A stretch of DNA of 63,319 nucleotides, counting the filler, from Guillardia theta CCMP2712 (lineage: Eukaryota > Protista > Cryptophyta), in NCBI RefSeq assembly GCF_000315625.1. It is 5 parts of 5 records of this genome, joined end to end, with 100 filler letters (N's around TTAATTAATTAA, not from the genome) between each part and the next. Parts side by side here need not be neighbours in the genome. Positions count along the whole stretch, not along the records: positions 28,678 to 58,769 come from NW_005434585.1; 4 more parts are not named here. One strand, written 5' to 3'. Shown one piece after another: positions 9,900 through 58,769 of the stretch. Under the pieces are notes generated by a model. That model was not told where the DNA came from and did not search any database. It worked only from the letters and a program-made list of their open reading frames with translations. The first letter of the stretch is position 1, and every line of letters starts with the position of its first letter. Made by a program: the position numbers and the translations under genes.

Positions 9900-9917
9900 A
9901 GCCGACAGATCGATGAA

Positions 9918-9980: not shown

Positions 9981-11058
9981 CCCTCCCCTGCATCATGTGA
10001 TAGAGTGCCTCGAATAAATACATCCCAGATACCAACTCTGACAATACCTCACCTCCGCAGCCTTGGGCACGTCACTACCCCTCATCTCTCCTTCCACGGG
10101 TGCGTGCCCGGCACCTTTTGAAGGACGCGATCCTGGTGATGATTGGTGTTCCCTGCCGGTTCTCAGAGAAGGAACCATGGCATATAAGCTGATGACGATC
10201 AGCAGGCATGAGGTAGGTCCTCCTGACGTCTTGATCTCACTTGATGCCACCAATCATCATAAGCGTCTCGTTAGGGCCACTGGGTTGCAAAGGCTAAAGA
10301 CGTTTTGCTCAAGACCTCAACCAAACCCGAACATTGCTTCAAGCTGAGAGCGAAGCAGGACATGCGGAGCAAAGCTGCGATACCACCGTTTCCGACTCTA
10401 GCTCAGTCACCTCATGCCTCATGCTGGCGACTTGAAAGCAGCCTGTGCTGCATTCACACATTGATTGTTTGGCATGCTGGAAGGAATACCTGCCCCTTCC
10501 GACATGTCCCCGTTTCCTGACTTTTCTCACTGGCAAGCTGCAAGATCTTGTCATACATCTGTTCATACTGTGACACATGTTGTACACACAACCTTCGGGA
10601 AGGAGGGAGATCGCCAGAGCGATCACTGCTTCGTTCACTAGAACACGACGAGCCTGGCACGACCGTCTGATCGGACGGCGGGCTACTGCTGAGTCTACTG
10701 AGTCACTGAGAGAAAAGACAGCGAGGCGGCCCGGTTGAACCAACTTGCCCCTCATCCTGCCGACCGACTGCCGCGTCTTCTCTGATCATCACTGCATATT
10801 CCGAGGCTGCCGGCCAAGCCGACTGCATGGCAGAGTCCGATCACTGAGCCCGGGGAGTTCACCGGGCCCGGCCCAGGCCGGGCTGAGCCGCCCGGGAGCC
10901 CCGGACTCAGTCGCCGAAGATAAACTGCATGCACAATTCTTGAGGGGTGGGGGTGTTGAAAGAATGGGTAGTCTCTATCAAAATGGGGGTAGTTGCACAG
11001 GGATGAATGGGGTGGGTGTGAACAAACTACACCGGTGGGCCGGGGTGGAACGCAAGCC

Positions 11059-11730
11059 ATGTTGGCAGGGATTGTAATGAGGAGGATGGGGACTAAGACG
11101 ACGATGATGATGAGAATGATGAGGACGACGACGAGAAGAGAGATGATGACAACACACAACTTGAGGCTTCACTCTCCTCCTCTTCGCTCTTCTCCTCCAT
11201 CCTCTCTTGTCTCGCGCTCCAACATCTGCCCCCTACCAAGGCTGGACGCTTTCGGAGGTTGCAGGGGAAGAGCGAGCTTATCTAGCGCTGTCGAGGAAGT
11301 GAAGGACGAGTCGAACGCAGCAGAGGTCAACCCAGTTGTGGAAGAGAATCTGAAGGAGCTCCTTGAGCTCATAGAGGAGAAGAAGGGTGCCGACGTTCAG
11401 GTCCTCAATGTCAAAGATTACCCCAAGTTGATAAACATCTCAGAGTACACTGTGATCACAACGTGTACGAGCAGGAGACATATGCGGATCGTTGCCGAAC
11501 ACGTTGTGGAGCACTTCAGGTTGAAGGGGATGCTGGTGGAGAAGGTGGACGAGAACGATGAGGTGATAAAGGCGTCCCCCGCCATCGAGGGCATGGAATC
11601 GGATCGCTGGATGCTCGTAGACCTCAACGAGATTGTGTTTCATGCTTTCACCCAGGAGGGACGCGACTACTACAAGATCGAGGAGAACCTGCGGACTGAA
11701 AGCCCCATGGATGGGATAACTATGACGTGA
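11059..11730 (+). CDS. rsfS: ribosome silencing factor RsfS/Iojap (MALSU1-like), organelle-targeted
   Basis: KKGADVQVLNV..SEYTVITTCTSRRHM..WMLVDLNEIVFHAF..GRDYYKIE matches the RsfS motif set. The R/S/T/M-rich N-terminal extension resembles a transit peptide. Confidence 0.88.
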   Translation: MLAGIVMRRMGTKTTMMMRMMRTTTRREMMTTHNLRLHSPPLRSSPPSSLVSRSNICPLPRLDAFGGCRGRASLSSAVEEVKDESNAAEVNPVVEENLKELLELIEEKKGADVQVLNVKDYPKLINISEYTVITTCTSRRHMRIVAEHVVEHFRLKGMLVEKVDENDEVIKASPAIEGMESDRWMLVDLNEIVFHAFTQEGRDYYKIEENLRTESPMDGITMT

Positions 11731-12201
11731 GCGTGCATGGGACATGATTCTTGTGGGGGGCAGGGGAGGGGAGGAGAGCGTGGAAGATTGTTTTTTGAAG
11801 GCAGGAGGAGCGAAGGAAGTGTGGAGAGTAGCGATGGAGATTTTCCGTGTACAAGTTTCTTCTTGTTCCCACGATCGCAATCACAAATAAACCTCCTCTT
11901 CGCTAGGAGACACCCAACCGATCCTTCCGAGAAACTCCTCCTCCTCCTCCTCCTCCTCCTCCTCCTCCTTCTCCTCCTTCTCCTCCTTCTCCTCCTCCTT
12001 CTTGCAGACCCACACCTGCTCTCCCCTCCCTCCTGCCCTCGCTCGCCGCCCCCGCCCCCTCCGACCTCCTACCAGCCCCTCTGCTGCCGTTCAGTCCCCA
12101 TTCCAACCCCCGGGTTCCCTTGTAAACATACAACAAGAAATTCGATAGCCGTTGGCGGGCAGGAGGAGGAGGGAACTGAACGGCAGGAGCGAGCGAGCGA
12201 G

Positions 12202-12598
12202 ATGGAGACGAAGATGACTCACAGGTGAGAAGGAAGAGGAGAGGGAAGGAAGGAGGAGATAGGAGGAGGTGCGGGAGAGGAAGCGGAGGGGAGGGGGGGC
12301 AGGACTTTGGAGAGGAGAGAGAGAGGAGGAGGGGAGAGAGAGAGGAGGAGGGGAGAGAGAGAGGAGGAGGAAGGCGCAGGAGCTGATGAGGCCCAGCCTG
12401 ATCAAGGCAGTGTCGGGAGAGTTCGACCTGGAGAGCGTGTACAAGTTGACGCTCTCGCGGATGAACATCAAGACGATGGAGAACCTGGAGGCGTGCGTGA
12501 ACTTGCAGGTAGAGGAGAGGGAGGGGGAGGAGGGGGAGGGGAAGGAAGGGGAGGAGAGGAGGGAGGGACACGAGGGGAGGGGAGGGGAGGGAGGGGCA
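12202..12598 (+). CDS. leucine-rich repeat protein, LRRC61-like (5' part, cut by gap)
   Basis: The exon LIKAVSGEFDLESVYKLTLSRMNIKTMENLEACVNLQ resembles the LRRC61 N-terminus and first LRR. Confidence 0.6.
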
Positions 12599-12698
12599 NN
12601 NNNNNNNNNNNNNNNNNNNNNNNNNNNNNNNNNNNNNNNNNNTTAATTAATTAANNNNNNNNNNNNNNNNNNNNNNNNNNNNNNNNNNNNNNNNNNNN
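12599..12698. other. artificial assembly gap/linker
   Basis: 44 N + TTAATTAATTAA (stops in all frames) + 44 N. Confidence 0.97.
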
Positions 12699-14203
12699 TT
12701 GTTAGAGGGGGCCAAAGAGGAGGCCAGGAGGGGGACGGGGGGGGGCCAAAGAGGAGGCCGGGAGGAGGACGGGAGGCCCCCCCGAGGTAATTGTCCCGCA
12801 AAGGATCCCAGTTTGGAGTGAGCTGGTCAAGGTTAATCTCCCCCCCCCCCCCCCCCCCCCCGGATCTCATAAGAAGTACCCCCTCATGACGTTCGCAAAC
12901 CCCAAATCGTAGGTATCTCACCTCTCCGAGTGATCATCCGATTTGTAATTGCTGCCCCTTTTTAAGACTATATGAAAATCTGAGGGGAGCCTGATATGCT
13001 AGTGATACAGTGTTTTATTACCCCCTACCCTCCGTGCTATGTTCAAAAGAACCTCACCAGTACCCCTATACCCCTGCCCTCAACATATCCCCATCCAAGT
13101 TCTCAGTACCGGTAATTGGTTAGATCAAAGTACCGGTATATTTAAAGGATATCTCACCCCCTACCCCACCTTTCTCGAGTGCCCTCTGTCGAAAAACACC
13201 ACCCCATACTTTGGAGACTACCCCACTGGTTCGAAACTCTACTCCACTTGAGTTTTCTCTATCCCATAGCTATGACTTGTTCTAATTATTCTACTAGTGA
13301 ATTATGCCTATCCTTCATACATTTACCACCCTTCGCTTCTGATCACCCCCATCAGGAACACCCCCACCGCCGTCCATGGCTACACCCTACCCCTCCCCTC
13401 TCTGAGGGCTTTCCCGCTCCTCGCATGCTCTTCTCCCGCCAGGCTGACGCTGTTCGCTTCTATCATCCGCCTCCTGCCGCCTCCTCTTGCTTCCTCCTTC
13501 TCCAACTCTATCTCACCTCCTCCCTCATCCTCCTCATGAACTTTTCATCTTCTCCTCCTCATACATCCTCTTGATACACATCTTCATTGTTTAATCAATA
13601 CATCGGTATAGGTGTGCTTCTGGTCTCTTGATTCCAGGCTTCTTTCCCCACGTGTCTTCCTAGATGTCTCGCCTTGCAACTTAATGATGTCATTGTCTGT
13701 TATCTGCTCCACTTCGTGATGAGCATCATGCTTTTTTTTTTTTCACAAGCAGTGTTTCGCTTCGCCTCAAACCTGATTGCTTGTCTCTACCATGCAAATC
13801 TTGTAAATAGATATGATGTCGCCATGGTCGTTGTCACTCTGGTACTGACCCAGTGGATCTTTGACTGTTGGAATTGTCGGGTGTGTACTGCTACAACAGC
13901 TTCGATTTGATTTACCCCAGACATGTTTACTCTATTGAACGATGTTTTTGTGAGGATCCACACATCATACTCGCATATGTTCATCTTGTCTCAACATTTC
14001 ATGCTTTCTTGTCACACACATGTTGCTTTCTTCCCATTCAGCTCATCCTTTCTTTTGAGATACTTATTTTCTTCATAGCTGCCGACGAGGAGGACCTTCA
14101 CCCGACATGTTCTGTTGATTTTCCAGGTTTGTTGCGCAGCAGACGGATAAGATTTGATCTGTGCAACAACTCTTTGGAGGTTTCTCCGCATTGATATTTC
14201 ACA

Positions 14204-17200
14204 ATGGATGATTTTATGGACGATGACGAAATTCGTCAACCAGATACCTGGGAAATTATTCGAAAATATTTTGATGAAAATGGTCTAGTCCAACAGCAAA
14301 GAGCTTCTTACAATGAGTTCATTCTACAGAATGTCCAAGAAGTCATTGAAGACTACAAAGGACAGATTGAAGTCATTGCTACTCCGCAGTACAAGCCAGG
14401 CACAAAACAAGATTACAAACAGAAAATTCAGGTTGACTTTGGTAGAGTCAGGATCGCGCAGCCCAACATCACTGAGGTGGAGGGCAGAAAAGAAAGATTG
14501 CTTCCTTACATGGCCCGTTTGCGAAAGTTGACCTACTCATGCCAACTCTTTGTGGACATCACGTTGAGAAAATACAAGGTAGCGTCCGATGGATCCGAGC
14601 AGCTGGATAACATTGATGAGCATGAGAGGGTTCCTTTAGGTAAAGTTCCGGTTATGCTTCGATCTGAAGTTTGTCGTCTTTTTGGGAAATACAATAAGGA
14701 CATCATGGACCTGAAGGAGTGCCCTCAAGATCAAGGAGGATATTTTGTTATCAACGGCAGTGAGAAAGTTTTGCTGGCCCAAGAAAGAAGGGCTAATAAT
14801 CTTGTTTTTGTTTTCAAGAAGACTCTTGGAAAGTTTGCATATGTTGCAGAGGTTGGAAGTCAGGTGGAGAAAGGAAACAAACCACCTTCTACTCTCTACA
14901 TGAAGTTGTGGAATAGAGAAAACAACGCGCGATTTGGTGCTTCAGTTGTGCTCACACTGCCATATGTCAGGAAAGAGATCCCGATCGTGATCGTTTTCCG
15001 AGCTTTGGGTATTGAGAGTGACCGTGAAATTCTTGAGCATATCGTTTACAACTTGAAGGATGTCCAGATGATGGAGGCATTGAGACCGTCGCTTGATGAA
15101 GCAGCTCAGGGCAAAGATCTTTCAACTCGTGAAGCGGCTTTGGATTACATCGGTAGGCGAGCCCTCGGGATGACGACTTCACGTGAAAATCGTATTCAAC
15201 ATGCACATGATATTTTGATTCGTGAGTTGCTGCCTCACATCGGCATAACAGAAGAATCTCTCACTAAGAAACAATACTTCCTCGGTTATGTCTGTAATCG
15301 ACTCCTGGCATGCTCTCTTGGCAGGAGGCAACCCGACGACCGTGACCACTACGGTAACAAGCGTGTAGATATGGCTGGTCCGCTTCTTGCCGGACTTTTC
15401 AAAGGGTGTTTCAAGCGCCTCGTGAAGGAATTTCGGAAGTCACTTCAGGATTCTCTGGATAATGGAAAGGAAGTCAACATGAACACAGCCTTCAAGCAGG
15501 ATTTCATCACCAAGGGCATCAAGTACTGCATGGCAACTGGTAATTGGGGAGTGGGCAAAGCTGCTGTTGCTGGTCAAGCCACGCGGACTGGAGTGAGCCA
15601 GGTGCTCTCGCGTTTAACATTTGCAGCCGCTCTCTCTCATTTGCGAAGAGCCAACACACCTATCGGTATTTACTTCCATTCAATTGAATGTATTTCTGAT
15701 GATTGTAACAGGCAAGGAGGGGAAAATTGCACAACCTCGACAGCTGCACAACACACAATGGGGTGTCGTTTGCCCAGCAGAGACTCCCGAGGGCCAGGCG
15801 TGCGGTCTGGTCAAGAATCTTTCCCTCATGACCTACGTCTCGGTCGGTGGCGCATCGCAAGTCATAATCGAGCTGCTTCAGGCTGGAGGTATGGAAGAGC
15901 TCGAAGAGTTGGCATCTCCAGCTATCTGTGCCAGCTCGCGATTTAGCAAGGTCTTCGTGAACGGTGTCTGGGTGGGCATGACCGACGATCCCGACAACCT
16001 CGCGAACACGCTGCGAGAGCAGAGGCGTGAGATGACGATTGGAGGCATGATTCATGAGGTCGGGGTAGCAAGAGATATTGGGGAACGTGAATTGTTCATA
16101 TCCACAGACTATGGACGTCTGATGCGTCCTCTGCTGATCGTTGACAAAGAAACAGGATTTTTGAACTTGAAAAGATCGAACATCATCCACATGACACAGA
16201 ACGAGCAGACGACTTGGTCTGAAATCTTGCGTAAGGGCTTCATTGAGTACATCGACGTGATGGAAGAGGAGACTTGCTACATTGCCATGTTGGTGAAGGA
16301 CGTTGGCAGCAACGACCTCTACCAATATACTCACTGTGAGATTCACCCGGCAATGATCCTCGGTGTTTGCGCGAGTATTATTCCTTTCCCCGACCACAAT
16401 CAGTCTCCTCGTAATACTTATCAATCTGCTATGGGCAAGCAGGCTATGGGCATCTATGCCACCAATTATCAGGTATTACACTCTGCATTAGACTCTCTGC
16501 TTCTATCGCGTTTTTTGAATTTTTATGTTTCCTGCCTTTGAATTATACCGGTTCTGATTATTTGTGATCAGGTTCGAATTGACACTTTGGCTCATGTATT
16601 ATATTATCCACAAAAACCACTTGTCAAGACGCATTCCATGGATTATCTCAAGTTCAGAGAGTTGCCAGCAGGGCAAAACCTCATCGTGGCAATCGCAGTA
16701 TACAGTGGATACAACCAAGAGGATTCTCTTATTATGAGCCAGGTACGATGCTTCTTCCTAATTTTTCTAGCGCTGATTGTGCATTGCAGTCATCAATTGA
16801 TCGAGGGATGTTCCGTTCAATGTTTTATCGCAGCTACACAGACGAGCAGAAGACTGAGGGAGTTTTGTGCCTCGAGCAGTTCGAGAAGCCGCAGAGAGAA
16901 GAACTTGGCAGCGCAAGCTCGAGGGTGAATTACGACAAGCTCGATGTTGACGGCCTGGTGTTCCCAGCGCAGAATGTTGAGGACAGGGACATCATCATCG
17001 GCAAGACCACCCTTGTGACCAACTCTGATGACTCGGACCAGGCGCAGATCGCAGTGAAGAGAGACTCTAGCACTCGCCTGCGCCACAACGAGCACGGAGT
17101 TGTCGACCAGGTCTTGCTCACGACCAACAGTGACACTGGCCAGCGATTCGTGCAGATCAAAGTCAGGGCTGTCAGGGTGCCACAGATCGGCGACAAGTTT

Positions 17201-18141
17201 GCGTCTCGCCACGGGCAGAAGGGGACCGTGGGTATCACTTACCGTCAGGACGACATGCCCTTCACCTCAGAGGGGGTGAGCCCGGACCTCATCGTCAACC
17301 CTCACGCCATCCCATCCCGCATGACCATCGGGCATCTCATCGAGACCTTGCTGGGCAAGGTTGGATGTTTGACCGGAGACGAGGGAGACGCGACTCCCTT
17401 CAACGAGGTGAACGTCAAGGACGTTTCTGACATGCTCCACTCTCGCGGGTACCAGCGACATGGCAACGAGCGGCTCTACAACGGCCACACTGGCCGTCCC
17501 CTCACCGCCCTTGTCTTCTTCGGGCCCACCTACTACCAGCGTCTGAAGCACATGGTGGACGACAAGATCCATTCGCGAGCTCGCGGCCCGACGCAGATGC
17601 TCAACCGGCAGCCCATGGAGGGACGAGCGCGCGATGGCGGCTTGAGGTTCGGCGAGATGGAGCGAGACTGTATGATCGCACACGGATCAGCCAACGTGCT
17701 CAGAGAGAAGCTGTTCACGCAGTCGGACGGATACATGACGCACATCTGCCAGGATTGCGGACTCATTGCCATCGCTAACCTTGACAGCAACCTGTACCGC
17801 TGCCCTAACCAGGCCACTTGCAGGAACTCGTCGGTTGGTCTTGTTCTGCTCGTTTGCTCGATGACTCATTCGTTGCGACAGATCGGGATGATTGAGATTC
17901 CTTATGCAGCGAAATTGCTGTTCCAAGAACTCATGGCAATGCAGGCGAGTGTCCTTGTTCGTGATGTTGTTGATGAGGTGGAACACGATTCATGATGGTA
18001 GAGATGATGGTGGTAGACATGGTGTGGTTGTTTCGATTATGACACAAAGATGACGATGGTAAACATGCTGATGATTTCTTTCAGATTGCTCCAAGGCTCA
18101 TGACATCTCTTCCGGGCAACTGGCGACTGTATGACACCTGA
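14204..18141 (+). CDS. RPB2: DNA-directed RNA polymerase II second-largest subunit (multi-exon)
   Basis: Motifs [67 protein letters not shown] and [11 protein letters not shown]. Short introns explain the split ORFs. The last exon IAPRLMT..* ends at 18141. Confidence 0.97.
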
Positions 18142-18199
18142 GGGTCCTTACGATCGCCTTTCAATTCGAATCGATAAAGCATCAAAGGGAGGACGACTC

Positions 18200-19780
18200 T
18201 CTCTGTTCCTCTTTCTCTCAATCTCTCTACCCGCGGTCATAAAGGAAAATCTTCTAGACTTTCGAGTAGCCGATCGCTCCGACAAAGGCACGGGCGTGTG
18301 CATTCTGCTCCTGCAGGACCCTGTTAGCCATAAGGCTCCTCCTCCCTCTCCACTTGCCGCAACGAAGATTTTCTCGGAGCACGGCGGGCCTGCACGAATC
18401 TCCAGGTCGAGGGTGTAGTCAGTGACTCCTCCGATGTCGAAGGCGTTCTTGATGCCCTGGAAACAGAGCAGAGGACGTGGAGATCCAGAGAGAGAAGGGA
18501 AAGGGCAGGGGCGCGGAGAGATGGGAGGGAGCAGGTGGATGCGAAGGGGAGGGAGGAGTGATGGGAACGAGTGAGAAGGAGAGGGGGAAAAGGGAGATCA
18601 ACATGTCAGATCGGCTGATCACGAGCCGAGCTTTCATCCTCCTCCTCTATCACCTCCGGCCCAAATCCTCCTCTGAGCACCAGGCCGAAGGGAGAGTCGG
18701 TATAAAGCAGGATCCCGACAGTTTCGCCATCATCCAAGGGTATCTGCAGGCGACACGAGGGAGCGAGCGTGAGTCAAGAGGAGGATGTCATGTCCATGGA
18801 AGACAGCAGGACAGTCGCTCACGGGTTCATCAAGAGGGAAAGACTTGTAGAGCTCCGTCTTGATCGTGAACTGCCAGCACGTTCACAAACAATCGGCTAA
18901 TCGCCCAGGAGTGGGTCGAATTTCACCTCTCCCTGCTCGAACTCGATCACGTTCATCACTTGCTTTCTCTTTCCCAGGCACTTCCATGCAGAGGGATCGT
19001 TCTCGTTCCCTAGAAAGCTTCCTTTGGTGCACTTCCAAACCTGAAGGTCCAGCTCGACATCCTGGGCCAAGCTAGACGGGAAAACGGTATCAGGGACCAA
19101 GGGCAGGGAGATCAGGGCGGGCAAACCTCGAACATCCCGACTGAATGTCATGAATTTTCAACTTGCCGGACTTGCTTACAAGGTCAAAAAAGACTCCGTA
19201 CCTGAAAGGCATCTCAACATCTCAACACAACTACTTCTCTACACTGAGTGAGTTTTCAAAGATCGCACCAGCAGTTTGACGTTCGTGGCCTAGTGATGAG
19301 CAGCTCATCAGCCTGCTGACTCATCTTCATCGCTCTTCCTCCTGACCGCACGATCGCTGGCCTGGTCGCTGCATAGCGCCAGGGAGCAGAAGGTATGATG
19401 CCTGGCCTGCACCAACATAGTGAGGTGCAACCTTTCAAGTGCAGGAGCAAGTGAGGATCAGATAGCAGGGCAGAGATCGAGAGGCAGCTGGCATGTACCT
19501 TGATGATGCAGCAAGGCAATTATCAGCTCGAAACAGTCCCGCTGGGGAGCAGAACAACATCGTTCCTCTCCTCAACGAGGAGTCGGAGGAAGAGATCGGG
19601 ATCTGAGCCCGTGACGAAGGGGAGGTAGACAAAGGCATGGAATCAGGCGATGGGGAGTGAAGGAGTCGACAAGAAGGAGAGGAAGAGAAGAAGCTGGATG
19701 AGGAGGAGGAGGACGCAAGAGAAGCCTCTGCCATCCCCAACCCCAGCGACATCAACAGTCCCACTACCCGCATGTGCATG
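18200..19780 (-). CDS. probable multi-exon hypothetical protein (boundaries approximate)
   Basis: Coding-like minus-strand segments with intron-like interruptions and a hydrophobic N-terminus. No domain recognised. Confidence 0.3.
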
Positions 19781-47342: not shown

Positions 47343-49828
47343 TTGTCAAGTGCTTCGATGAACGCACAATCACGAAGCCGCGTTGGAGCCATGATGCGGC
47401 AGCACATGACTTCACCGGGCTTTCCTAGTCTAGAATCGGGTCCAGGGCAGCCTCCTGGACCTCAAGCTATACCGGCGAGACCTACTGTTCCAACAACCCA
47501 GGGGCATAGTCACCAGATGACGTCTCATGTGCCGACTGCTAACATGGGAGCAAATATGAATCCGTGCATGGCTGCTGCACCGATCCCTACCGGCATGTCC
47601 CCGGGAATCGCACCAGGCCCCAATGCGAACGTGAATCCCAATATGGCAGCGGGCATGCCCGGTTCTGCTTTATCGCCTGATTTTCAAATGTACTGGAATC
47701 AGATGGCGGCGATGCAAGCAGCTGCAGCGTATCAAAACCGCCAGGATGTTCAAAGTCCAGTCATGCCTCATGTTGATCGTCCAGTTGCCCGGCAAATTCC
47801 CCCAAAGCATGAGAAGAAATCCCTTTTCAAAGTGAAAGAGAACAGAGACATTGTACTAGTATCAAACGTTGGTGGAAATGCATCTAACATGCCATCGCAA
47901 TCACAAACAACTCCAGACACTAAAGATGCAACCTCGGGCATGCCCGGTTCTGCTTTATCGCCTGGTTTTCAAATGTACTGGAATCAGATGGCGGCGATGC
48001 AAGCAGCTGCAGCGTATCAAAACCGCCAGGATGTTCAAAGTCCAGTCATGCCTCATGTTGATCGTCCAGTTGCCCGGCAAATTCCCCCAAAGCATGAGAA
48101 GAAATTACTTTTCAAAGTGAAAGAGGACAGAGACATTGTACTAGTATCAAACGTTGGTGGAAATGCATCTAACATGCCATCGCAATCACAAACAACTCCA
48201 GACACTAAAGATGCAACCTCGGGCATGCCCGGTTCTGCTTTATCGCCTGGTTTTCAAATGTACTGGAATCAGATGGCGGCGATGCAAGCAGCTGCAGCGT
48301 ATCAAAACCGCCAGGATGTTCAAAGTCCAGTCATGCCTCATGTTGATCGTCCAGTTGCCCGGCAAATTCCCCCAAAGCGTGAGAAGAAATCCCTTTTCAA
48401 AGTGAAAGAGAACAGAGACATTGTACTAGTATCAAACGTTGGTGGAAATGCATCTAACATGCCATCGCAATCACAAACAACTCCAGACACTAAAGATGCA
48501 ACCTCCAATTCAGTACAGCAGAGCTCGATTCAACCCAACAGCAATTCAAGTGAAGTTGAATCAAGCATCGGATCGAAAGTATCGATACTTTCGATCCTTG
48601 ATTTGATTGGACTGACATTTATTTTGAAAATTCCTGGTTTTGTTTTCGCAGTGCAAGGAGAGGGAGGAGCAGCAGCGCAAGGAGAGGGAGGAGCACGACG
48701 TTGCTTCCCAGGTCTTTTGTGCCATGTCTTGTATCTCGATGTGCGAATCCCTTTCCGAGCCAATTTTTTTCTCAGTTGGGTCACATCCCATCGTGGAATT
48801 TCGAGTCCTTCACGGGCCTGCAGCAGATCGGCTCAGGCTCCTCCAAGCTCGTCTACAGGGCTCGGTGGCAGCATCCGCATGGCAGCAGCGCTGAGGTTGC
48901 CATCCAGCGAATCAGTGGCAGCGGAGGCACTAGGAGGAGAAAAGAGTTCGACCAGGAGGTGAAGATCTTCCGCGAGCTGGGCCGTCACCCCAATCTCCTT
49001 CGCCTTCTCGCCACCAGCATCGAGCCGAGCTCCGGCGACTGCTGCCTGGTGACTGAGTTTGCTTCCAAAGGCTCTCTCGATGTGATCTTGTCCAACTTCG
49101 CCGAGGAGGAGGAGACAATGAGTCTGCTGGTGCAGCTGCAGGTGGCGAGGCAGATCTGTGACGGGATGGTGCAGCTGTCGCTGCATGAGGTTGTGCATCG
49201 GGACCTGGCGGCGAGGAACGTGCTTGTGTTCAGCCTAGACCCGGAGGATCACCTGGCTCTCAGCGTCAAGATAGCCGACTACGGGCTGTCCATCATGGCC
49301 TCGCGCGGGTACGGGGAGAGTAGGGCCGGGTGCGTGAGCACGGCAGGCTCGACAGCTCGGCCCGTCCGGTGGATGGCGCCGGAGAGCATAAGACGAAGGC
49401 AGTACTCGGAGAAGAGCGACGTGTGGGCGTTCGGGGTGACCATGTGGGAGGTCTGGACTTACGGAGAAGTGCCTTATTGGGAAATCACAAATGACGCTGA
49501 AGTGGGACCCAAGGTTGTAGATGGCGAGCGACTTGCGGCTCCTTCAGCATGCCCGCCTAACGTTTATTCCATCATGCAAAAATGCTGGAAGGAGAAGAAG
49601 ACCGAGCGACCAAGTTTCAGCCAGCTACAGCAGCTGCTTCAGGAGCAGTACGACGAAGCCGTCGGAGATCGCGGCCAGGAATGCGTCGTCTGCTTGGAGC
49701 GAAGAGCTGAATGGGCGCTCATCCCCTGTGGTCACAAGTGTTTGTGTGAGGACTGCAAGGAGGGAGCGACGTCGAGGCCATGCCCGATGTGTCGCTCGAG
49801 CGCGACGAGCATCTACAAGATTTACTAG
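47343..49828 (+). CDS. tyrosine-kinase-type protein kinase with C-terminal C3HC4 RING and N-terminal 95-aa repeats (further 5' exons likely)
   Basis: HRDLAARN, KIADYG, PVRWMAPE and SDVWAFGVTMWE. RING CVVC..IPCGHKCLCEDC..CPMCR. Linkage to the upstream repeat exon is inferred from splice sites. Confidence 0.85.
47650..48505 (+). repeat. 285-bp in-frame tandem triplication
   Basis: Units start at 47650, 47935 and 48220 and differ by only a few substitutions. Confidence 0.95.
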
Positions 49829-50006
49829 TACAAGATCAGCCAGCAGGAGCTATGAATTGTTGGCTCGTCTCAGCTCGTCATGAGGCGCGATAGTCACAGT
49901 CTGACTTGTTTACCTCAAGTAAACCTAGTCTACCTTGACCTAGTCTATCCCAGTCTTTCCTGTCACGTGCTCTGCTAGGGCCTCTGCTAGGGCCTGGCCG
50001 CAGAGT

Positions 50007-50715
50007 AGGACAGCTCATGCTTGCAAGGCTGTAACGCTCGACGCATGATGAAGCAGCTGCCCTTCTCCCTCGAAGGCGCAGCAACCAAGCTCGAAGCAGT
50101 CGGCTTCGACAGGGAGCCTGAGGCAGCTGGTCAGCGGGGCACCAGCGACGCTGGAGTTTACAGACCTGGAGAGGATCACAATGGAGGCAGCATCTCAGTC
50201 AAGCCAAGAGGACATGCAGCTCGTCAGCGAGCTGTCAGCAGTCATCGAAGATGCAACTTCCCTGAACGACACGGGGACAAGCGAGCCGATCAAGCTGGTC
50301 CTGGACAAGGCCGTTGGCAACCTCCACGACACCTTCTACTCTCCGGGGAGCCTGGAGTTCATGTCGCTGGGAGAGTGGGCGAAGATGCCAGAGGAGCAGG
50401 GAGTGGGACGCAACGTTCTCAAGGAGAAGCTGGGGGAGTGGCTGCAGAGCAAGCGCTTGACTCGCGTGCAAGGAGAGAGCAAGAAGGCAAGGAGGGGCAG
50501 CGCGTTTCGAGTCGCCACGGGCAACGGCAGCTGCTGAGCTTGAGCAGGAGGCGGAGAGCGACGACATCGAGCTTCGATCTCTTAGCGTCCTGTTCATAGC
50601 ACTGAGTAAATTCGCAGAGATGCACGTGCTGGAGGCTGCTCGCTGAAGGTGGACAGGTATGAAGCAACCGAAGGCCAAGGGGAGGAGAGGCAACTCTCCC
50701 GACTGAGGCTGAGGA
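50007..50715 (+). mobile_element. element A copy 0 (degenerate, internally deleted, tail-less)
   Basis: Homologous to parts of the ORF and 3' repeat of A1/A2. It ends at GAGGAAG directly joined to telomere repeats. Confidence 0.85.
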
Positions 50716-50753
50716 AGGGTTTAGGGTTTAGGGTTTAGGGTTTAGGGTTTAGG
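50716..50753 (+). repeat. interstitial telomeric repeat (TTTAGGG)n
   Basis: About 5 units, G-rich strand on +. Confidence 0.97.
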
Positions 50754-51017
50754 AGGCGCCGTTATTTTCCGCTCAGAGCAATCAACACACCCTCATCCTG
50801 TTATACCTCGACTTTGCAAACTTTTTAACAACGTGGCAGTCGAATCCATCGCAAAAATCATGGAAGTATATGGCTTCCATCACTGTGATGTAGACGTGGT
50901 AATCAGCGGCAGCAAAGGGATAGCATTGCAGATTCAAGAGAAGACAGCAGAAGTAGAGAGTAGAAAGACGCCTCAGAAGCAGGGTTCGCATCGTAGGCCG
51001 TGTACTCCCAGTGCTCG
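50754..51017 (+). mobile_element. element B copy 1 (mini derivative with RT fragment, frameshifted)
   Basis: Shares the A 5' tip AGGCGCCGTTATTTTC and part of the A 3' region. The middle encodes an RT motif-A-like peptide (5-T run versus 6-T in B2). Confidence 0.8.
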
Positions 51018-51086
51018 AGGGTTTAGGGTTTAGGGTTTAGGGTTTAGGGTTTAGGGTTTGCTGAGGGTTTAGGGTTTAGGGTTTAG
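51018..51086 (+). repeat. interstitial telomeric repeat with GCTG interruption
   Basis: (TTTAGGG)n-TTTGCTGAGGG-(TTTAGGG)n. Confidence 0.97.
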
Positions 51087-53483
51087 AAGGCGCCGTTATT
51101 TTCGGCAGCCTGCAGGCGCCGTTATTTTCGGCAGCAGGCGCCGTTATTTTCGGCAGCATGGCTCCTTGCCAGGTGTAGCCTCCGGGAAGCCGCCAGGGCG
51201 CCAAGGAAGCTGCAAGCGAGAGGTTTGTATACTTCAAATAGCTTTCTAAGTATGGTTCTTCAGTATGATGAAAATGTTCGCAACCTGCTGTATCGGAGAT
51301 CATGCCAATACACGGCGGCAGAGCGGACTTGTGGATGCCTCTGTCCTCGAAGCTGATCTCGTCGCGAGGGTGAAGAGCTTCGCGAAGCGGTATCCGAACA
51401 GCAGGACAGCCCAGGCTTGCAAGGCTGTGGAGGGATGCACCCCCGACGCTATCGCAGAAGCCATCCGCTCGACATGTCAGCAGGCACGACGTGAGCTTCT
51501 ACAAGAAGCGATGACTGGATGGAGTGACGCATCCAGAGAGTGGTTTATGCAGCAGATTGAAGAAGCCAAGAAGGAGAAGGTCGAGACATACACCGCCTCA
51601 GCAGGCAACGAGGTGACTTCCTTCATCTCCATGACTCTCCTGGGCATCTCCTCGGTGTATGTCAACCATGAAGAGAAGCTGAAGAAGAAATTTGAAGAGA
51701 TCGGACTGATCGTAGACTCAGTGCAAGAGAGTAAAGCAATCATGTGGAAGGCTCCGTATAGACCCGAGATAGCGAGTGCTGAGGAGATCCCGGTGACTGT
51801 TTCCTTCCTCCGCAATGCACAAGCGGAGAAGCTCTGGCAGGGAAGAGAGGACTTCGCGATCGATGGTCGCAAGTTCACAGCTGTACATGTGAGCATCGTG
51901 CACGATAGATCTTTCAAGATTCGAGCCAAGAGAGGACCCTGGGGCAAAGGGGGCAGCTTGGCAGAGCTGACTCACCTGCTAACCTTGGGCGGCATGACAA
52001 CGGCTGAGATAGCTGCCGTCTATCGCTATCAGCTGCTGCGCCAGTCCCTTGCAGCGGTCCAACTCCAGCCGCTGGCAGGCATGCTGGTCGCTGGGGCGCC
52101 AGGACAGCAAGTCCACAAAGGCTTAGGTCAGAAAGGCTTCATCGCTGTAGGGGCCAACGTCATCTGGAGACAGAGGGAGGTGGAGTGGATCGTCTCCTCG
52201 AGCTGCCCAGAGGCGAATGATACAGCATTTCGAGCTTTCCGAGAGAGCGAAGCGATGGAGGGAGTACACCTGACTCTGTTCAGCGAGGACCCGAAGATCA
52301 GAGAGGCGCTCGCAGTCGAGTTGACAGCTGATCGCTTTGTGTCCAGAAATAAGTTGAAGAAGGCATCAAGGATGCAGAAGAAGGCAGGCGGCAAGGACGG
52401 CAAGGAGATCAAGATCATCATCAAGTCGACGGCGGCATCTGGTCGCTTCACGAGGAAGGAGATGGAGGGGCTGTGCAACGGCGGCAACACGTCTATCGCA
52501 AGAGTCAAGAGAGTCTTGTTGGAGATCGCTAACAGGCTCGAGATCAACGTTGAAGGCATCGACATGGAGGAGGATTTGAACACCAAGTCCTGGAACGGGT
52601 CCAAGCTATGCATCCTCCTTGGCTCCACGGAGGATGCTCGACGCATGATGAAGGAGCTGCCCTTCTATCTCGAAGGCGCAGCAACCAAGCTCGAAGCAGT
52701 CGGCTTCGACAAGGAGCCTGACTCTGAGGCGGCTGGTCAGCGGGGCACCAGCGACGCAGCGCAGCGACAGGAGGAGAGCGAGGGAGAGTGGCTGGAGTTT
52801 ACAGACCTGGAGAGGATCACAACTTGTGGAGGCAGCATCTCCGTCAAGCCAAGAGGACATGCAGCTCGTCAGCGAGCTGTCAGCAGTCATCGAAGATGCA
52901 GCTTCTTTGAACGAGGCGGGGACGAGCGAGCCGATCAAGCTGGTCCTGGACAAGGCCGTTGGCAACCTCCACGACACCTTCTACTCTCCGGGGAGCCTGG
53001 AGTTCATGTCGCTGGGAGAGTGGGCGAAGATGCCAGAGGAGCAGGGAGTTGGGCGCAACGTTCTCAAGGAGAAGCTGGGGAAGTGGCTGCAGAGCAAGCG
53101 CTGGAGGCCAAGGTGAGGAGAGGCAACTCTCCTGACTGAGCTGAGGAAGCTGAATGGAGGTAGAGTAGGTGGCGACCGAAGGCCAAGGTGAGGAGAGGCA
53201 ACTCTTCTGACTGAGGCTGAGGAAGCTGAATGGAGGTAGAGTAGGTGGTGACCGAAGGCCAAGGTGAGGAGAGGCAACTCTCCTGACTGAGGCTGAGGAA
53301 GCCAAGAGAAGACAGCAGAAGTAGAGAGTAGAAAGACGCCTCAGAAGCAGGGTTCGCTTTGTAGGCCGTGTACTCCCAGTGCTCGAGCGCCTCTTTAGAC
53401 TAGGATCAAATTGCATAAGCCCACAACGAGGCCGAGCAACATTCTAGCATTCTAATAAACTCACATAATAATAATAATAATAA
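51087..53483 (+). mobile_element. element A copy 1: RT-less ORF1-type non-LTR derivative with (TAA)6 tail
   Basis: ORF 51265-53139 has a 4-bp insertion CTTG at 52823-52826 and a C-terminal deletion versus A2. Also 75/76-bp 3' repeats, AATAAA, and a tail at 53466-53483. Confidence 0.85.
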
Positions 53484-53508
53484 TAGGGTTTAGGGTTTAG
53501 GGTTTAGG
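53484..53508 (+). repeat. interstitial telomeric repeat (TTTAGGG)n
   Basis: About 3.5 units. Confidence 0.95.
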
Positions 53509-53773
53509 AGGCGCCGTTATTTTCCGCTCAGAGCAATCAACACACCCTCATCCTGTTATACCTCGACTTTGCAAACTTTTTTAACAACGTGGCAGTCGAA
53601 TCCATCGCAAAAATCATGGAAGTATATGGCTTCCATCAGCGTGATGTAGACGTGGTAATCAGCTGCAGCAAAGGGATAGCATTGCAGATTCAAGAGAAGA
53701 CAGCAGAAGTAGAGAGTAGAAAGACGCCTCAGAAGCAGGGTTCGCATCGTAGGCCGTGTACTCCCAGTGCTCG
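53509..53773 (+). mobile_element. element B copy 2 (mini derivative with in-frame RT motif-A fragment)
   Basis: The frame from 53529 reads QSNQHTLILLYLDFANFFNNVAVESIAKIMEVYGF. Confidence 0.8.
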
Positions 53774-53803
53774 AGGGTTTAGGGTTTAGGGTTTAGGGTT
53801 TAG
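53774..53803 (+). repeat. interstitial telomeric repeat (TTTAGGG)n
   Basis: About 4 units. Confidence 0.95.
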
Positions 53804-55329
53804 CCGGGGATGGATCGACTGAACCGGGGATGGATCGACTGAACCGGGGAGGGATCGACTGAACCGGGGATGGATCGACTGAAAATATGGCCGGGGATGG
53901 ATCGACTGAAAATATGGGATAAGATAATCAGAGAAGAACAACTGGAACGGAGGAGGAAAGAAGCCCCCCTTACCTTGACGGAAACCTTTCTCCTGGAACC
54001 ACAAGTGGGCAGAAGGATCCTAGGTCGAGCCTTACAGAGGTGTCGAGGATCAGTACTTCGGACAGCCATCCAAGCTATTACCTGGTCAGCACCTACGAGG
54101 AAAAAGCTGTTCCAGTGGAAGAAGACGACATCCCCCTGTTGCCCATGGTGCGAAGGCAGGGAAGAAAGCTGGGTGCATATCCAGCTAGCCTGCAAAGAAT
54201 TTGAGCTCATGATCGCTTTGGCACACAACAGAGTAATGGAGACAATCAAGGGATGCCTGACAGAAAGCTGGAAGAAGAAAAGTGTTGAACAGGAGAGTTG
54301 GTGGCAAACGCCAATCAACTCTATGACAGGGCTAGGACTGACTGCACCAGAGCACGGCAATCTTATACCAGATGGGCTCTGCTACTTCAGAGGGAGCAAT
54401 CGCATTGTGCTGGTGGAGATAGCAAGAACTTCAGAGTTCACGGGCGAGGGAAGCAGTCTGGCAAACCTGAAAGCAAAGTTTCAGGAGAAAGAACAGAAAT
54501 ATGCAGCACTGCGGGCAGAGATGACAAGTAGGAGCGACAACACAGAGGTCATACAAGCCACGTTCATTGCAGGAGTGAGAGGCAGTATTATGGAGCGGGA
54601 ATGGACCACAAATTTCCGGAACTTGCTCATGGACGAGGATATGAATGACAGAGCCATGACCAAGATAGTCATCCAGCTGCTCGAAGTGCAACACATGCTG
54701 TGGACCTCAAGGAGACGAGGAGACACGACCAACAGCCTGAGAGAACAAGCATGAAGGATATAAGATGGTTGGAAGATGAAGGGGTAAATATCAACGAGGA
54801 CAGATCACAAGGGAAGCCTCAAAAGCTAGCAACCAGGATCAGCATGGCTGGGAAGGGGCAAGGACACAGAAGACAGATGGAAGACGAAAGGGCAACGGTC
54901 AACGGACAGACCGAAGGTGAAGCCTCATAGGCGAAAAACAACCAACATGGCAAGGAAGGGGCAAGGACACAGGAGACAGATGGATGACGACAGGGGAAAG
55001 GTCAACAAGGACAGACTGACGGGGAAGCTTCACAGGCGGCAGGCGGGGAAGGGACATGGACTTAGCGCAAAAACTGGACAGGTGGACGGTTACACTGAAA
55101 CCGTCAACCCGGGCCCGGAGGAGACACGGCCGCACCGGCGGCTCGGAACTGAGGAGTATGGAAACAACAGAAACAGCGAAACAACGATAGAACCCTGGAT
55201 GCCACAACGGGCCATCCAAGAAGGGCCGCTCTGCCAAGCGTGAGAACCCATTTAGACTAGACTAGACCGGGAAGGTACCCGATGCGACTACTCTAGCATT
55301 CTAATAAAATCGACTACTACTACTACTAC
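53804..55329 (+). mobile_element. element C: 5'-truncated RLE-type non-LTR retrotransposon with (TAC)5 tail
   Basis: ORF 53870-54754 has the CCHC knuckle CPWC-x7-H-x4-C, AHN, PDGL..VLVE..KEQKY and GVRG, the C-terminus of R2-like restriction-like-endonuclease elements. 3'UTR with AATAAA; tail at 55315-55329. Confidence 0.88.
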
Positions 55330-55378
55330 TAGGGTTTAGGGTTTAGGGTTTGCTGAGGGTTGAGGGTTTAGGGTTTAG
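55330..55378 (+). repeat. interstitial telomeric repeat with GCTG interruption and a TTGAGGG variant
   Basis: Directly visible. Confidence 0.95.
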
Positions 55379-58068
55379 AAGGCGCCGTTATTTTCGGCAG
55401 CCTGCAGGCGCCGTTATTTTCGGCAGCAGGCGCCGTTATTTTCGGCAGCATGGCTCCTTGCCAGGTGTAGGGGAAGCCGCCAGGGCGCCAAGGAAGCTGC
55501 AAGCGAGAGGTTTGTATACTTCAAATAGCTTTCTAAGTATGGTTCTTCAGTATGATGAAAATGTTCGCAACCTGCTGTATCGGAGATCATGCCAATACAC
55601 GGCGGCAGAGCGGACTTGTGGATGCCTCTGTCCTCGAAGCTGATCTCGTCGCGAGGGTGAAGAGCTTCGCGAAGCGGTATCCGAACAGCAGGACAGCCCA
55701 GGCTTGCAAGGCTGTGGAGGGATGCACCCCCGACGCTATCGCAGAAGCCATCCGCTCGACATGTCAGCAGGCACGACGTGAGCTTCTACAAGAAGCGATG
55801 ACTGGATGGAGTGACGCATCCAGAGAGTGGTTTATGCAGCAGATTGAAGAAGCCAAGAAGGAGAAGGTCGAGACATACACCGCCTCAGCAGGCAACGAGG
55901 TGACTTCCTTCATCTCCATGACTCTCCTGGGCATCTCCTCGGTGTATGTCAACCATGAAGAGAAGCTGAAGAAGAAATTTGAAGAGATCGGACTGATCGT
56001 AGACTCAGTGCAAGAGAGTAAAGCAATCATGTGGAAGGCTCCGTATAGACCCGAGATAGCGAATGCACAAGCGGAGAAGCTCTGGCAGGGAAGAGAGGAC
56101 TTCGCGATCGATGGTCGCAAGTTCACAGCTGTACATGTGAGCATCGTGCACGATCGATCTTTCAAGATTCGAGCCAAGAGAGGACCCTGGGGCAAAGGGG
56201 GCAGCTTGGCAGAGCTGACTCACCTGCTAACCTTGGGCGGCATGACAACGGCTGAGATAGCTGCCGTCTATCGCTATCAGCTGCTGCGCCAGTCCCTTGC
56301 AGCGGTCCAACTCCAGCCGCTGGCAGGCATGCTGGTCGCTGGGGCGCCAGGACAGCAAGTCCACAAAGGCTTAGGTCAGAAAGGCTTCATCGCTGTAGGG
56401 GCCAACGTCATCTGGAGACAGAGGGAGGTGGAGTGGATCGTCTCCTCGAGCTGCCCAGAGGCGAATGATACAGCATTTCGAGCTTTCCGAGAGAGCGAAG
56501 CGATGGAGGGAGTACACCTGACTCTGTTCAGCGAGGACCCGAAGATCAGAGAGGCGCTCGCAGTCGAGTTGACAGCTGATCGCTTTGTGTCCAGAAATAA
56601 GTTGAAGAAGGCATCAAGACTGCAGAAGAAGGCAGGCGGCAAGGACGGCAAGGAGATCAAGATCATCATCAAGTCGACGGCGGCATCTGGTCGCTTCACG
56701 AGGAAGGAGATGGAGGGGCTGTGCAACGGCGGCAACACGTCTATCGCAAGAGTCAAGAGAGTCTTGTTGGAGATCGCTAACAGGCTCGAGATCAACGTTG
56801 AAGGCATCGACATGGAGGAGGATTTGAACACCAAGTCCTGGAACGGGTCCAAGCTATGCATCCTCCTCGGCTCCACGGAGGATGCTCGACGCATGATGAA
56901 GGAGCTGCCCTTCTATCTCGAAGGCGCAGCAACCAAGCTCGAAGCAGTCGGCTTCGACAAGGAGCCTGACTCTGAGGCGGCTGGTCAGCGGGGCACCAGC
57001 GACGCAGCGCAGCGACAGGAGGAGAGCGAGGGAGAGTGGCTGGAGTTTACAGACCTGGAGAGGATCACAATGGAGGCAGCATCTCAGTCAAGCCAAGAGG
57101 ACATGCAGCTCGTCAGCGAGCTGTCAGCAGTCATCGAAGATGCAGCTTCTTTGAACGAGGCAGGGACGAGCGAGCCGATCAAGCTGGTCCTGGACAAGGC
57201 CGTTGGCAACCTCCACGACACCTTCTACTCTCCGGGGAGCCTGGAGTTCATGTCGCTGGGAGAGTGGGCGAAGATGCCAGAGGAGCAGGGAGTGGGGCGC
57301 AACGTTCTCAAGGAGAAGCTGGGGAAGTGGCTGCAGAGCAAGCGCTGGACTCGCGTGCAAGGAGAGAGCAAGAAGGCAAGGAGGGGCAGCGCGTTCTCGC
57401 CACGGGCAACGGCAGCTGCTGAGCTTGAGCAGGAGGCGGAGAGCGACGACATAGAGCGTCGATCTCTTAGCTTCCTGTTCATAGCACTGAGTAAATTCGC
57501 AGAGATGCATGTGCTGGCCTGCTCGCTGAAGGTGGACAAGAAGGACCGACTGCGGGTGGAGATGAGGGAAGATGACGAAGAAGAGGAAGACAGTGGAGGA
57601 AGAGCAAGGCGAGGGCGAGGAAGAAGACGGGGCGAGCCCGTACCGAGCTTGAGCTGAGCCCAAGGTAAGGAGAGAAGGTAGGAGGCGACCGAAGGCCAAG
57701 GTGAGGAGAGGCAACTCTCCTGACTGAGCTGAGGAAGCTGAATGGAGGAGGAGTAGGTGGCGACCGAAGGCCAAGGTGAGGAGAGGCAACTCTCCTGACT
57801 GAGGCTGAGGAAGCTGAATGGAGGTAGAGTAGGTGGCGACCGAAGGCCAAGGTGAGGAGAGGCAACTCTCCTGACTGAGGCTGAGGAAGCCAAGAGAAGA
57901 CAGCAGAAGTAGAAAGTAGAAAGACGCCTCAGAAGCAGGGTTCGCATTGTAGGCCGTGTACTCCCAGTGCTCGAGCGCCTCTTTAGACTAGGATCAAATT
58001 GCATAAGCCCACAACGAGGCCGAGCAACATTCTAGCATTCTAATAAACTCACATAATAATAATAATAA
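55379..58068 (+). mobile_element. element A copy 2 (most complete; 701-aa ORF 55552-57657; (TAA)5 tail)
   Basis: Near-identical to A1, with a 39-bp in-frame deletion versus A1. Tail at 58054-58068. Confidence 0.88.
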
Positions 58069-58113
58069 TAGGGTTTAGGGTTTAGGGTTTAGGGTTTAGG
58101 GTTTAGGGTTTAG
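58069..58113 (+). repeat. interstitial telomeric repeat (TTTAGGG)n
   Basis: About 6 units. Confidence 0.97.
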
Positions 58114-58769
58114 AGAGGCGCCGTTATTTTCGGCAGCATGGCTCCTTGCCAGGTGTAGGGGAAGCCGCCAGGGCGCCAAGGAAGCTGCAAGCGAGAGGTT
58201 TGTATACTTCAAATAGCTTTCTAAGTATGGTTCTTCAGTATGATGAAAATGTTCGCAACCTGCTGTATCGGAGATCATGCCAATACACGCAGAGCGGACT
58301 TGTGGATGCCTCTGTCCTCGAAGCTGATCTCGTCGAGAGGGTGAAGAGCTTCGCGAAGCGTTATCCGAACAGCAGGACAGCCCAGGCTTGCAAGGCTGTG
58401 GAGGGATGCACCCCCGACGCTATCGCAGAAGCCATCCGCTCGACATGTCAGCAGGCACGACGTGAGCTTCTGCAAGAAGCGATGACTGGATGGAGTGACG
58501 CATCCAGAGAGTGGTTTATGCAGCAGATTGAAGAAGCCAAGAAGGAGAAGGTCGAGACATACACCGCCTCAGCAGGCAACGAGGTGACTTCCTTCATCTC
58601 CATGACTCTCCTGGGCATCTCCTCGGTGTATGTCAACCATGAAGAGAAGCTGAAGAAGAAATTTGAAGAGATCGGACTGATCGTAGACTCAGTGCAAGAG
58701 AGTAAAGCAATCATGTGGAAGGCTCCGTATAGACCCGAGATAGCGAGTGCTGAGGAGATCCCGGTGACT
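58114..58769 (+). mobile_element. element A copy 3 (5' part, cut by gap)
   Basis: Same 5' tip (single copy) and same ORF N-terminus. Confidence 0.88.

Follow-up and report, generated by a model that had tools for sequence, protein, structure and literature searches.

A candidate telomere-repeat-specific family of Dualen-clade retrotransposons and its ORF1-only derivatives in a Guillardia theta subtelomeric array

Long interspersed nuclear elements (LINEs) that target telomeres are known from the R1 clade (SART/TRAS), from CRE-like elements (MoTeR) and from the Jockey clade (HeT-A/TART). SART1 of Bombyx mori enters the telomere repeat at TT^AGG so that its sense strand lies on the G-strand, and its 3' untranslated region (UTR) is recognised in trans (PMC7265360). 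MoTeR1 and MoTeR2 of Magnaporthe oryzae lie with their 5' ends outward, among tracts of half a unit to many units of telomere repeat; these interstitial tracts promote breakage and array change (PMC7367193). Here we describe an array of elements separated by TTTAGGG tracts in the cryptophyte Guillardia theta CCMP2712. It occupies positions 50007-58769 of a joined 63,319-nt stretch of DNA (the window, along which all its coordinates count), within the part that comes from NW_005434585.1 (28,678-58,769). We consider it very likely that this interval is the proximal part of a G. theta subtelomere, built of telomere-repeat-specific retrotransposons without long terminal repeats (non-LTR) of the Dualen/RandI clade.

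Dualen is the only clade with both the ancestral restriction-like endonuclease (RLE) and the later apurinic/apyrimidinic endonuclease (APE). Their joint presence is its hallmark (PMC9977147; PMC4640811). The Chlamydomonas elements were reported by Kojima and Fujiwara (2005, as cited in PMC9977147 and PMC4640811), and cryptophyte members (Dualen-1_GCr, Dualen-5_CCu) have been rebuilt from transcriptomes (Lescot et al. 2016, PMC5029228). LINE/Dualen elements have been described as expanded in cryptophytes "except Guillardia theta", with no mention of those described here (PMC12747079); the repeat census that reported little Dualen in this species probably missed them. In the literature that we searched (Guillardia, Dualen/RandI, cryptophyte, telomere, non-LTR; Repbase lay outside that search) we found no description of these elements, and no report of Dualen telomere targeting or of partners carrying only the first open reading frame (ORF1). 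A preliminary description of the window had known of no such system in cryptophytes. This still holds for telomere targeting, which is absent from the same literature, while cryptophyte Dualen as such are known from transcriptomes (PMC5029228).

Orientation, junctions and chromosomal setting

The array comprises seven units in the same direction, in the order A0-B1-A1-B2-C-A2-A3, with six TTTAGGG tracts (23 to 69 nt) between them and the G-strand always on the plus strand (Table 1). A two-unit TTTAGGG pattern allowing at most one mismatch matched 20 times, all on the plus strand, against an expectation of 0.00 from 100 shuffles. There are three long A copies (A1, A2 and A3) and the remnant A0, two B units of 265 nt and a single 1.5-kb C unit. 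The array reaches the end of the piece, where A3 is cut.

To place these units in the genome we fetched 10 G. theta loci with ORF1 or ORF2 copies, each on a different scaffold (69 kb to 1.4 Mb). At all 10 the queried copies lie no more than ~17 kb from a scaffold end with their sense strand outward. Counted over the window and these loci, telomere tracts number 38 on the G-strand and 0 on the C-strand, and neither ORF1 nor ORF2 was matched on the minus strand. Proximal borders typically pass from unique sequence through decayed repeat to the first element. Because the copies sit at scaffold ends, their terminal position on the chromosomes is inferred.

The junctions follow a fixed grammar. In fifteen complete 3' ends, from eight different scaffold ends, AATAAA is separated by 4 to 6 nt from a (TAA)n or (CTA)n stretch that finishes in TA, and GGGTTTAG comes next. 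The register of the repeat after the tail is identical in all 15; two more A-type ends have a degenerate tail or tract (locus L001, position 12571; locus L008, position 12574). Full-length 5' ends come after a tract ending in TTTAG or TTTAGG, at times with 1-2 extra bases. The elements have telomere repeat on both sides in constant orientation and register, which makes them candidate members of the functional class of telomere-repeat-specific LINEs. All families have in common a TTAGAC box, ~80 nt short of the end, and a TCTAATAAA(C/A)TC box that immediately precedes the tail; the occurrence of these boxes in A, in C and in the autonomous copies described below is as expected if one ORF2 protein recognises all of them.

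The preliminary description had reported seven co-oriented A, B and C units with TTTAGGG separators, the G-rich strand on plus, running into the contig end, and we recovered the same arrangement. It had further proposed a subtelomeric setting and insertion into TTTAGGG with the sense strand on the G-strand. Position at 10 of 10 scaffold ends supports the first proposal; strand bias and the single 3' register support the second. It had also suggested tabulating the flanks of further copies; in the sample of 10 scaffold ends, no complete tailed element lay away from repeat, and with the window included all 38 tracts had the G-strand orientation.

These recurrences also bear on whether the array is an artefact of a Sanger/454-era draft, with repeats collapsed or chimerically joined. 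Scaffolds do break inside arrays, and some copies contain N-gaps (loci L002 and L003). Nevertheless, 10 further scaffolds show the same junction types, where neither the tract lengths nor the neighbours are the same; gene models and transcripts exist, and A and C sequence is found in many probable RNA runs (C in runs of 13 studies, A in 7). We therefore regard an artefact as very improbable.

An autonomous element and its derivatives

A tblastn search with relatives of C located a reverse transcriptase (RT) in locus L001; it lies upstream of a 3' end with a tail and shares the orientation of the array. In a sister copy, locus L007, the reading frame is open from 8273 to 15058 and encodes Exo_endo_phos, RVT_1 and zf-RVT domains and the CCHC-RLE tail, with the motifs NVNG, QEV, GGDFNAS, LDHVF, LLYLDFANFF, GLPQG and SFADD. 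Its RT (RVT_1, E 7e-28) has R2 as its nearest solved relative (E 7e-22), followed by L1 ORF2p. The APE gave Pfam Exo_endo_phos matches at E 5e-4 in L007 and at E 2e-3 in P0160. As a single sequence it had no match in the PDB and a profile was needed; the profile of the region matched the LINE-1 endonuclease at E 3.5e-5, and the catalytic motifs N, QE, GDxN, LD and DH are all conserved. No Pfam match to RNase H was obtained between the RT and the CCHC motif even at E 10, and this segment aligns to the RNase_H domains of relatives with the catalytic D/E/D/D positions replaced. A Peptidase_C48 domain lies upstream of the APE in ORF2 of locus L006 (E 7.7e-6; 26.3 bits, cut-off 20.7) and is also present in the relative P0151. 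Pieced together from L006, L007 and L001, ORF2 has the order C48 protease, APE, RT, putative decayed RNase H, CCHC, RLE. The preliminary description had proposed an RLE-type family: the RLE is there, but the family is not purely of that type, given the APE, the protease and the putative decayed RNase H.

The 5' part of the element is seen in L006, where a 204-nt telomere tract is followed by the element start, a 771-aa ORF1 and an ORF2 that stays open to the scaffold end. The ORF1 stop and ORF2 start overlap there as UAAUG (8712-8716). SART1 has the same arrangement, its two ORFs being joined by a UAAUG stop-start overlap with translational coupling. As reconstructed, the autonomous element carries a 19-22-nt 5' unit, once or repeatedly, an ORF1 of ~700-770 aa to which no fold was assigned, and an ORF2 that begins at the UAAUG. 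Its length of ~10.5 kb is inferred from two partial copies, L006 (the 5' 5.8 kb) and L007/L001 (ORF2 and the 3' end), which are ~76-80% identical where they overlap. The copies are cut by the scaffold end (L006), by the 10-kb flank limit (L001, L002) or by 5' truncation (L007). At least three ORF2 lineages and at least seven 5' unit types occur among the loci.

An APE N-terminal to the RT, a C-terminal CCHC and PD-(D/E)xK RLE in the same protein, an RT of non-LTR type and a C48 protease upstream of the APE are features of Dualen that occur here. An RNase H between the RT and the CCHC motif also belongs to the pattern of the clade, and in its place stands the segment with replaced catalytic positions. 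From this architecture and from its metagenomic relatives, we place the element in the Dualen/RandI clade as part of the reading that we hold very likely. The RT also removes one other candidate, an endonuclease-less Penelope-like element (Athena/Coprina): it is nearest to R2 and L1, two nucleases accompany it, and the orientation is opposite to that given by overhang priming. Membership of the MoTeR/CRE clade was rejected on the presence of an APE and on the outward 3' ends.

In L007, a 1144-aa Ty3/gypsy-like pol ORF (RT/RNase H/integrase-like; 5470-8904) adjoins the 5'-truncated Dualen copy, whose ORF is open into it. The N-terminus of this pol ORF is a long run of the 8-aa repeat RSDDGRQR. 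No telomere tract was present in 15 kb at that scaffold end.

Judged from its sequence, A is an internal-deletion, ORF1-only derivative of the ~10.5-kb retrotransposon. It is made up of 5' units, ORF1, 76-nt repeats, an 85-nt RT remnant and a ~95-nt 3'UTR. The remnant (A2 positions 2512-2596) corresponds to B positions 181-263 and is the only RT sequence in A. The A ORF aligns over nearly its full length with the L006 ORF1 (29% identity, E 7e-75). An ORF1 homologous to that of an RT-bearing element, the lack of an RT and shared 3' end signals are what defines an ORF1-only partner of the HeT-A or HAL1 kind, and this accords with the initial view of A as a dependant with a long ORF and no RT. 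Such derivatives are commoner than autonomous copies.

The A ORF matches 38 GUITHDRAFT gene models, all annotated as "hypothetical protein", in subfamilies of ~85-97% and ~50-65% identity, and one Hanusia phi transcript matches at 36%; these matches mark the window as nuclear DNA of G. theta and A as a multi-copy family kept among related cryptophytes. Between intact A copies, the ratio of nonsynonymous to synonymous substitution rates (dN/dS) in ORF1 is 0.14-0.61, so that selection has preserved the protein. Transcripts of A and C are present in MMETSP data. The 701-aa ORF of A2 had no Pfam match, and ORF1 had no sequence match in the PDB with a 16-sequence profile and no Atlas match. The AlphaFold2 (AF2) model was poor (pLDDT 46.6), and residues 364-475 gave RRM- or ferredoxin-like matches at Z 7-9, inside the tool's stated background range, a hint that ORF1 possibly contains an RRM-like domain. 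Including ORF2 fragments, ~40 "hypothetical protein" models of the reference cryptophyte genome correspond to copies of these elements, in whose arrays scaffold ends break.

G. theta ORF1 shares 97% identity with a transcript that carries the label Heterocapsa arctica, and near-identical C sequence also occurs in freshwater and aquatic metagenome runs; both probably reflect cross-contamination, or G. theta as prey or spike-in. Two further A copies are interrupted. In L001, one is interrupted exactly at A2 position 750/751 by a 2952-bp insertion (16015-18966) whose terminal inverted repeats span 23 nt and are 96% complementary; the insertion resembles a DNA transposon with such repeats and carries a 335-aa minus-strand ORF to which no family was assigned. 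In L002, a 36-nt telomere tract (11103-11138) stands in place of ~55 nt inside a continuous A copy whose halves are almost in register, and is annotated within the gene model GUITHDRAFT_107157.

By homology, B and C are not families of their own: both are parts of ORF2, B a stretch of the RT and C the CCHC-RLE tail, truncated on its 5' side. B fuses the first 16 nt of an A-type 5' end to RT sequence that matches autonomous ORF2 residues ~783-861 by tblastn and is 89% identical at the nucleotide level to the RT of L001; the RT motif A (LDFANF) from which B had originally been recognised is legible. In the C ORF, alignment with 13 relatives reveals conserved C91, C94, H103 and C108, followed by P167-D168, E183, R186, K207 and Y211. 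The C profile matches the C-terminal part of solved R2 retrotransposon proteins (E 1e-18), and the AF2 model (pLDDT 87.6) has R2 structures as its best Foldseek matches (TMq 0.62). Alignment and model alike identify C as a linker, a CCHC knuckle and a restriction-like endonuclease of an R2-like protein, with nothing upstream of these. The CCHC and PD..E..K motifs agree with the preliminary assignment of this unit. More distant relatives have RT, RNase H and zf-RVT upstream of the CCHC-RLE domain. C corresponds approximately to ORF2 residues 1794-2074 and represents a second lineage, which shares 58% identity with the L007 type; locus L011 represents a third (47%).

An A'-C chimera is found in L003 (9316-11831, GUITHDRAFT_116523), where a subfamily-2 ORF1, to about residue 390, is joined in frame to a C-type CCHC-RLE tail. 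The junction lies inside the CCHC motif, and tracts stand on both sides as in a normal unit.

Table 1. Features of the array and its border in the window
Feature	Position	Strand	Description
12-nt tandem	49970..49995	+	2.2 copies, with TAGGG; border of kinase-RING gene and array
A0	50007..50716	+	ORF1-only remnant; 5'-truncated, internal deletion, 3'-truncated within the 76-nt repeat region; telomere repeat starts right at the truncated 3' side
Telomere tract 1	50717..50753	+	G-strand
B1	50754..51018	+	Mini-element: A-type 5' end (first 16 nt), then ORF2 RT fragment (motif A to B); 3'-truncated, last letters ..CTCGA
Telomere tract 2	51019..51087	+	Internal GCTGAGGG variant common to tract 5
A1	51088..53485	+	ORF1-only; three 5' units of 22-26 nt; ORF1 51265-53139 (624 aa), broken: compared with A2, 4 nt are inserted and 344 nt deleted; 3' end complete, with (TAA)n tail
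Telomere tract 3	53486..53508	+	
B2	53509..53774	+	Second RT-fragment mini-element; 98.5% identical to B1
Telomere tract 4	53775..53803	+	
C	53804..55331	+	5'-truncated tail of second ORF2 lineage; ORF 53870-54754 (294 aa); 3'UTR with 103-nt repeat (54843-55038), AATAAA, (CTA)n tail
Telomere tract 5	55332..55379	+	GCTGAGGG variant as in tract 2
A2	55380..58070	+	Complete ORF1-only element; three 5' units 55380-55449; intact ORF1 55552-57657 (701 aa); 76-nt repeats 57669-57890; 85-nt RT remnant 57891-57975; 3'UTR with TTAGAC box and TCTAATAAACTC box; (TAA)n tail
Telomere tract 6	58071..58115	+	
A3	58116..58769	+	5' part of ORF1-only element, single 5' unit; cut at piece end

The last gene before the array has its stop codon at 49826-49828, ~180 bp from the first element remnant. 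Over 47650-48505 (within the ORF 47343-48962) and 48701-49828, this gene appears to code for a 95-aa tandem repeat in three perfect copies (unit 285 bp, identity 98%), and then for a Tyr/Ser-Thr kinase domain and a C-terminal C3HC4 RING finger. The 12-nt tandem between this gene and A0 may be a decayed seed of telomere repeat.

A proposed route of insertion and the growth of the array

The orientation of the elements constrains how they arrive. At a chromosome end the G-strand points outward in its 5' to 3' direction. For the sense strand to lie on it, the C-strand of a duplex repeat has to be nicked and cDNA primed from that nick. Endonuclease-free attachment to chromosome ends, of the HeT-A/TART, MoTeR or Penelope-like kind, would instead use the 3' G-overhang as primer. 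It would readily give head-to-tail end arrays with short repeat tracts and an ORF1-only partner, as in MoTeR1/2 and HeT-A/TART, but would leave the antisense strand on the G-strand and the 3' end centromere-ward, whereas here the sense strand is on the G-strand at 38 of 38 tracts with tails outward. Both nuclease domains, moreover, retain their catalytic motifs. We give such attachment hardly any probability, and the orientation of the elements contradicts its HeT-A- or MoTeR-like form.

We instead propose target-primed reverse transcription (TPRT). Within duplex telomere repeat, an element nuclease would nick the C-strand, always at the same position, and the resulting 3'-OH, ending in ..CCCTA, would prime reverse transcription on an RNA tail ending in ..UA; the outcome would be a sense strand on the G-strand and a distal element 3' end. 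The constant TA before GGG suggests that the RNA tail and the nicked C-strand pair over two bases. The G-strand would be cut after TTTAG(G), and the junction ends imply a target duplication of 1-4 bp. The ORF2 protein would presumably mobilise A in trans, and the family may still be active. The array itself would grow as elements insert repeatedly into terminal or internal tracts, as units are duplicated locally and as telomerase heals elements that have broken or eroded.

The 5' ends suggest a further step. Each family opens with its own 19-22-nt unit, in 1 to at least 14 copies, and unit boundaries vary between copies of a family. In two 5'-truncated copies, C and an A in L001, the terminal 17-27 nt of the copy itself are freshly duplicated in tandem. 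In C (53804-53917) units of 20 nt and 27 nt are reiterated from the coding sequence for PGMDRLK(IW), a conserved ORF2 motif that is single-copy in relatives. There are also chimeras: the L006 5' end is preceded by part of the 3'UTR of another family, and a truncated A by 5' units that belong to another family. Our reading is that at the 5' end of the RNA the RT would often re-copy the terminal ~20 nt or jump template, generating variable unit numbers and chimeras; slippage after integration is the alternative. Variable, freshly made repeats of this kind would be a natural record of end-copying or template jumping by an RT.

Several observations weigh against this account or limit it. Among the fetched loci no single copy is full length from 5' end to tail, and neither the A lineage nor the C lineage is represented by an autonomous copy. 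No scaffold examined ends in a long terminal telomere tract. A distant relative from a marine metagenome (L012/L013) has the same AATAAA..(CTA)n end and a flank that is not telomeric, so telomere targeting is probably not general in the Dualen clade. Some units, B included, are 3'-truncated before the repeat and lack the 3' end that TPRT would need; they must have another origin, by healing, internal priming or recombination. About eight such units, in which repeat was added directly after an A, are consistent with telomerase having healed ends that were eroded or broken, or with internal priming. Finally, A1 and A2 have a common tract variant, so duplication adds to the array: they are 99.4% identical and have the same unusual GCTGAGGG variant in their upstream tracts, which identifies them as a local duplication rather than separate insertions. 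B1 and B2, which end without a tail and are present in the window alone when compared with the 10 fetched loci, are probably likewise a local duplication.

The relative in L012 (276-10073) is a complete-looking distant Dualen, with a 2578-aa APE-RT gene and a 622-aa RNase H-CCHC-RLE gene, and ends in AATAAA..(CTA)3.

The A and B duplicates and the truncated units are also what would be expected if the array had arisen mainly by recombination (unequal exchange, break-induced replication, telomerase healing), with ordinary LINEs trapped near the end and the tracts as healing scars. MoTeR arrays do expand by break-induced events (PMC7367193). On that explanation, however, there is no reason for 15 of 15 complete 3' ends, from eight scaffold ends, to meet the repeat in one register directly after the tail, or for full-length 5' ends to follow immediately on TTTAG(G). 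Each junction has a tract of different length, and the ORF2 lineages and 5' unit types, for all their number, obey the same grammar and orientation. Healing alone also leaves unexplained why, in the 10 loci, tailed complete elements are never away from repeat. We consider recombination as the main origin improbable, though less so than an artefact or end attachment, and retain telomere-specific insertion as the source of the tailed units.

A more ambitious combination of ideas is possible but doubtful. The two nucleases may split the work, one cutting the C-strand and the other the G-strand; the RT may reiterate the 5' ~20 nt in a telomerase-like manner and so rebuild a promoter-bearing 5' end; and arrays with an ORF1-only partner may serve as a renewable chromosome-end buffer in a telomerase-positive protist. 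We advance the three together only tentatively.

If telomere-specific insertion is correct, the G. theta family would represent an independent origin of LINE telomere targeting, in the Dualen clade and in Cryptista. A site-specific Dualen with a 7-bp target would also be a clean system in which to ask which nuclease sets the target and which strand each one cuts. Such a division of nuclease labour bears on how the APE replaced the RLE in LINE evolution.

Comparison with known systems

The closest likeness in protein architecture is to the cryptophyte Dualen elements, which, like that of G. theta, have the order C48, APE, RT, RNase H region, CCHC, RLE (PMC5029228). As in Dualen, the RT is nearer to R2 than to L1, and metagenomic relatives at ~25-34% identity have bona fide RNase_H, APE and C48 domains. 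Unlike Dualen, the G. theta element has other residues at the catalytic positions of the RNase H and a separate ORF1 ahead of ORF2, and it showed no SET domain. It differs further from the active Chlamydomonas Dualen, in which insertions are dispersed with very long duplications (PMC9977147), as it occupies only telomere repeat, in one orientation and with a very short duplication.

With HeT-A/TART of Drosophila the G. theta family shares head-to-tail terminal arrays and a Gag(ORF1)-only element that depends on an RT-bearing partner. HeT-A/TART belong to the Jockey clade, occur in a host without telomerase repeats and attach to the end with their poly(A) centromere-ward, whereas the persistence of repeat tracts in G. 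theta indicates that telomerase is evidently active.

MoTeR resembles the G. theta arrays in its head-to-tail telomere arrangement and in having a non-autonomous partner with common ends. It is a CRE-like, RLE-bearing element without an APE, in the opposite orientation, and MoTeR2 holds an unrelated insert rather than an ORF1. MoTeR 5' ends carry telomere-like variant repeats, in contrast to the reiterated 20-nt unit of G. theta.

In its manner of insertion the G. theta element is most like SART1. Both enter duplex telomere repeat at a fixed position beside a TA/AG step and have their sense strand on the G-strand, and by analogy the G. theta insertions fit endonuclease-driven, SART1-like entry into the C-strand. 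The two differ in descent and equipment: SART1 belongs to the R1 clade, has an APE alone, ends in poly(A) rather than (TAA)n or (CTA)n, targets the insect repeat TTAGG and has no dominant ORF1-only family.

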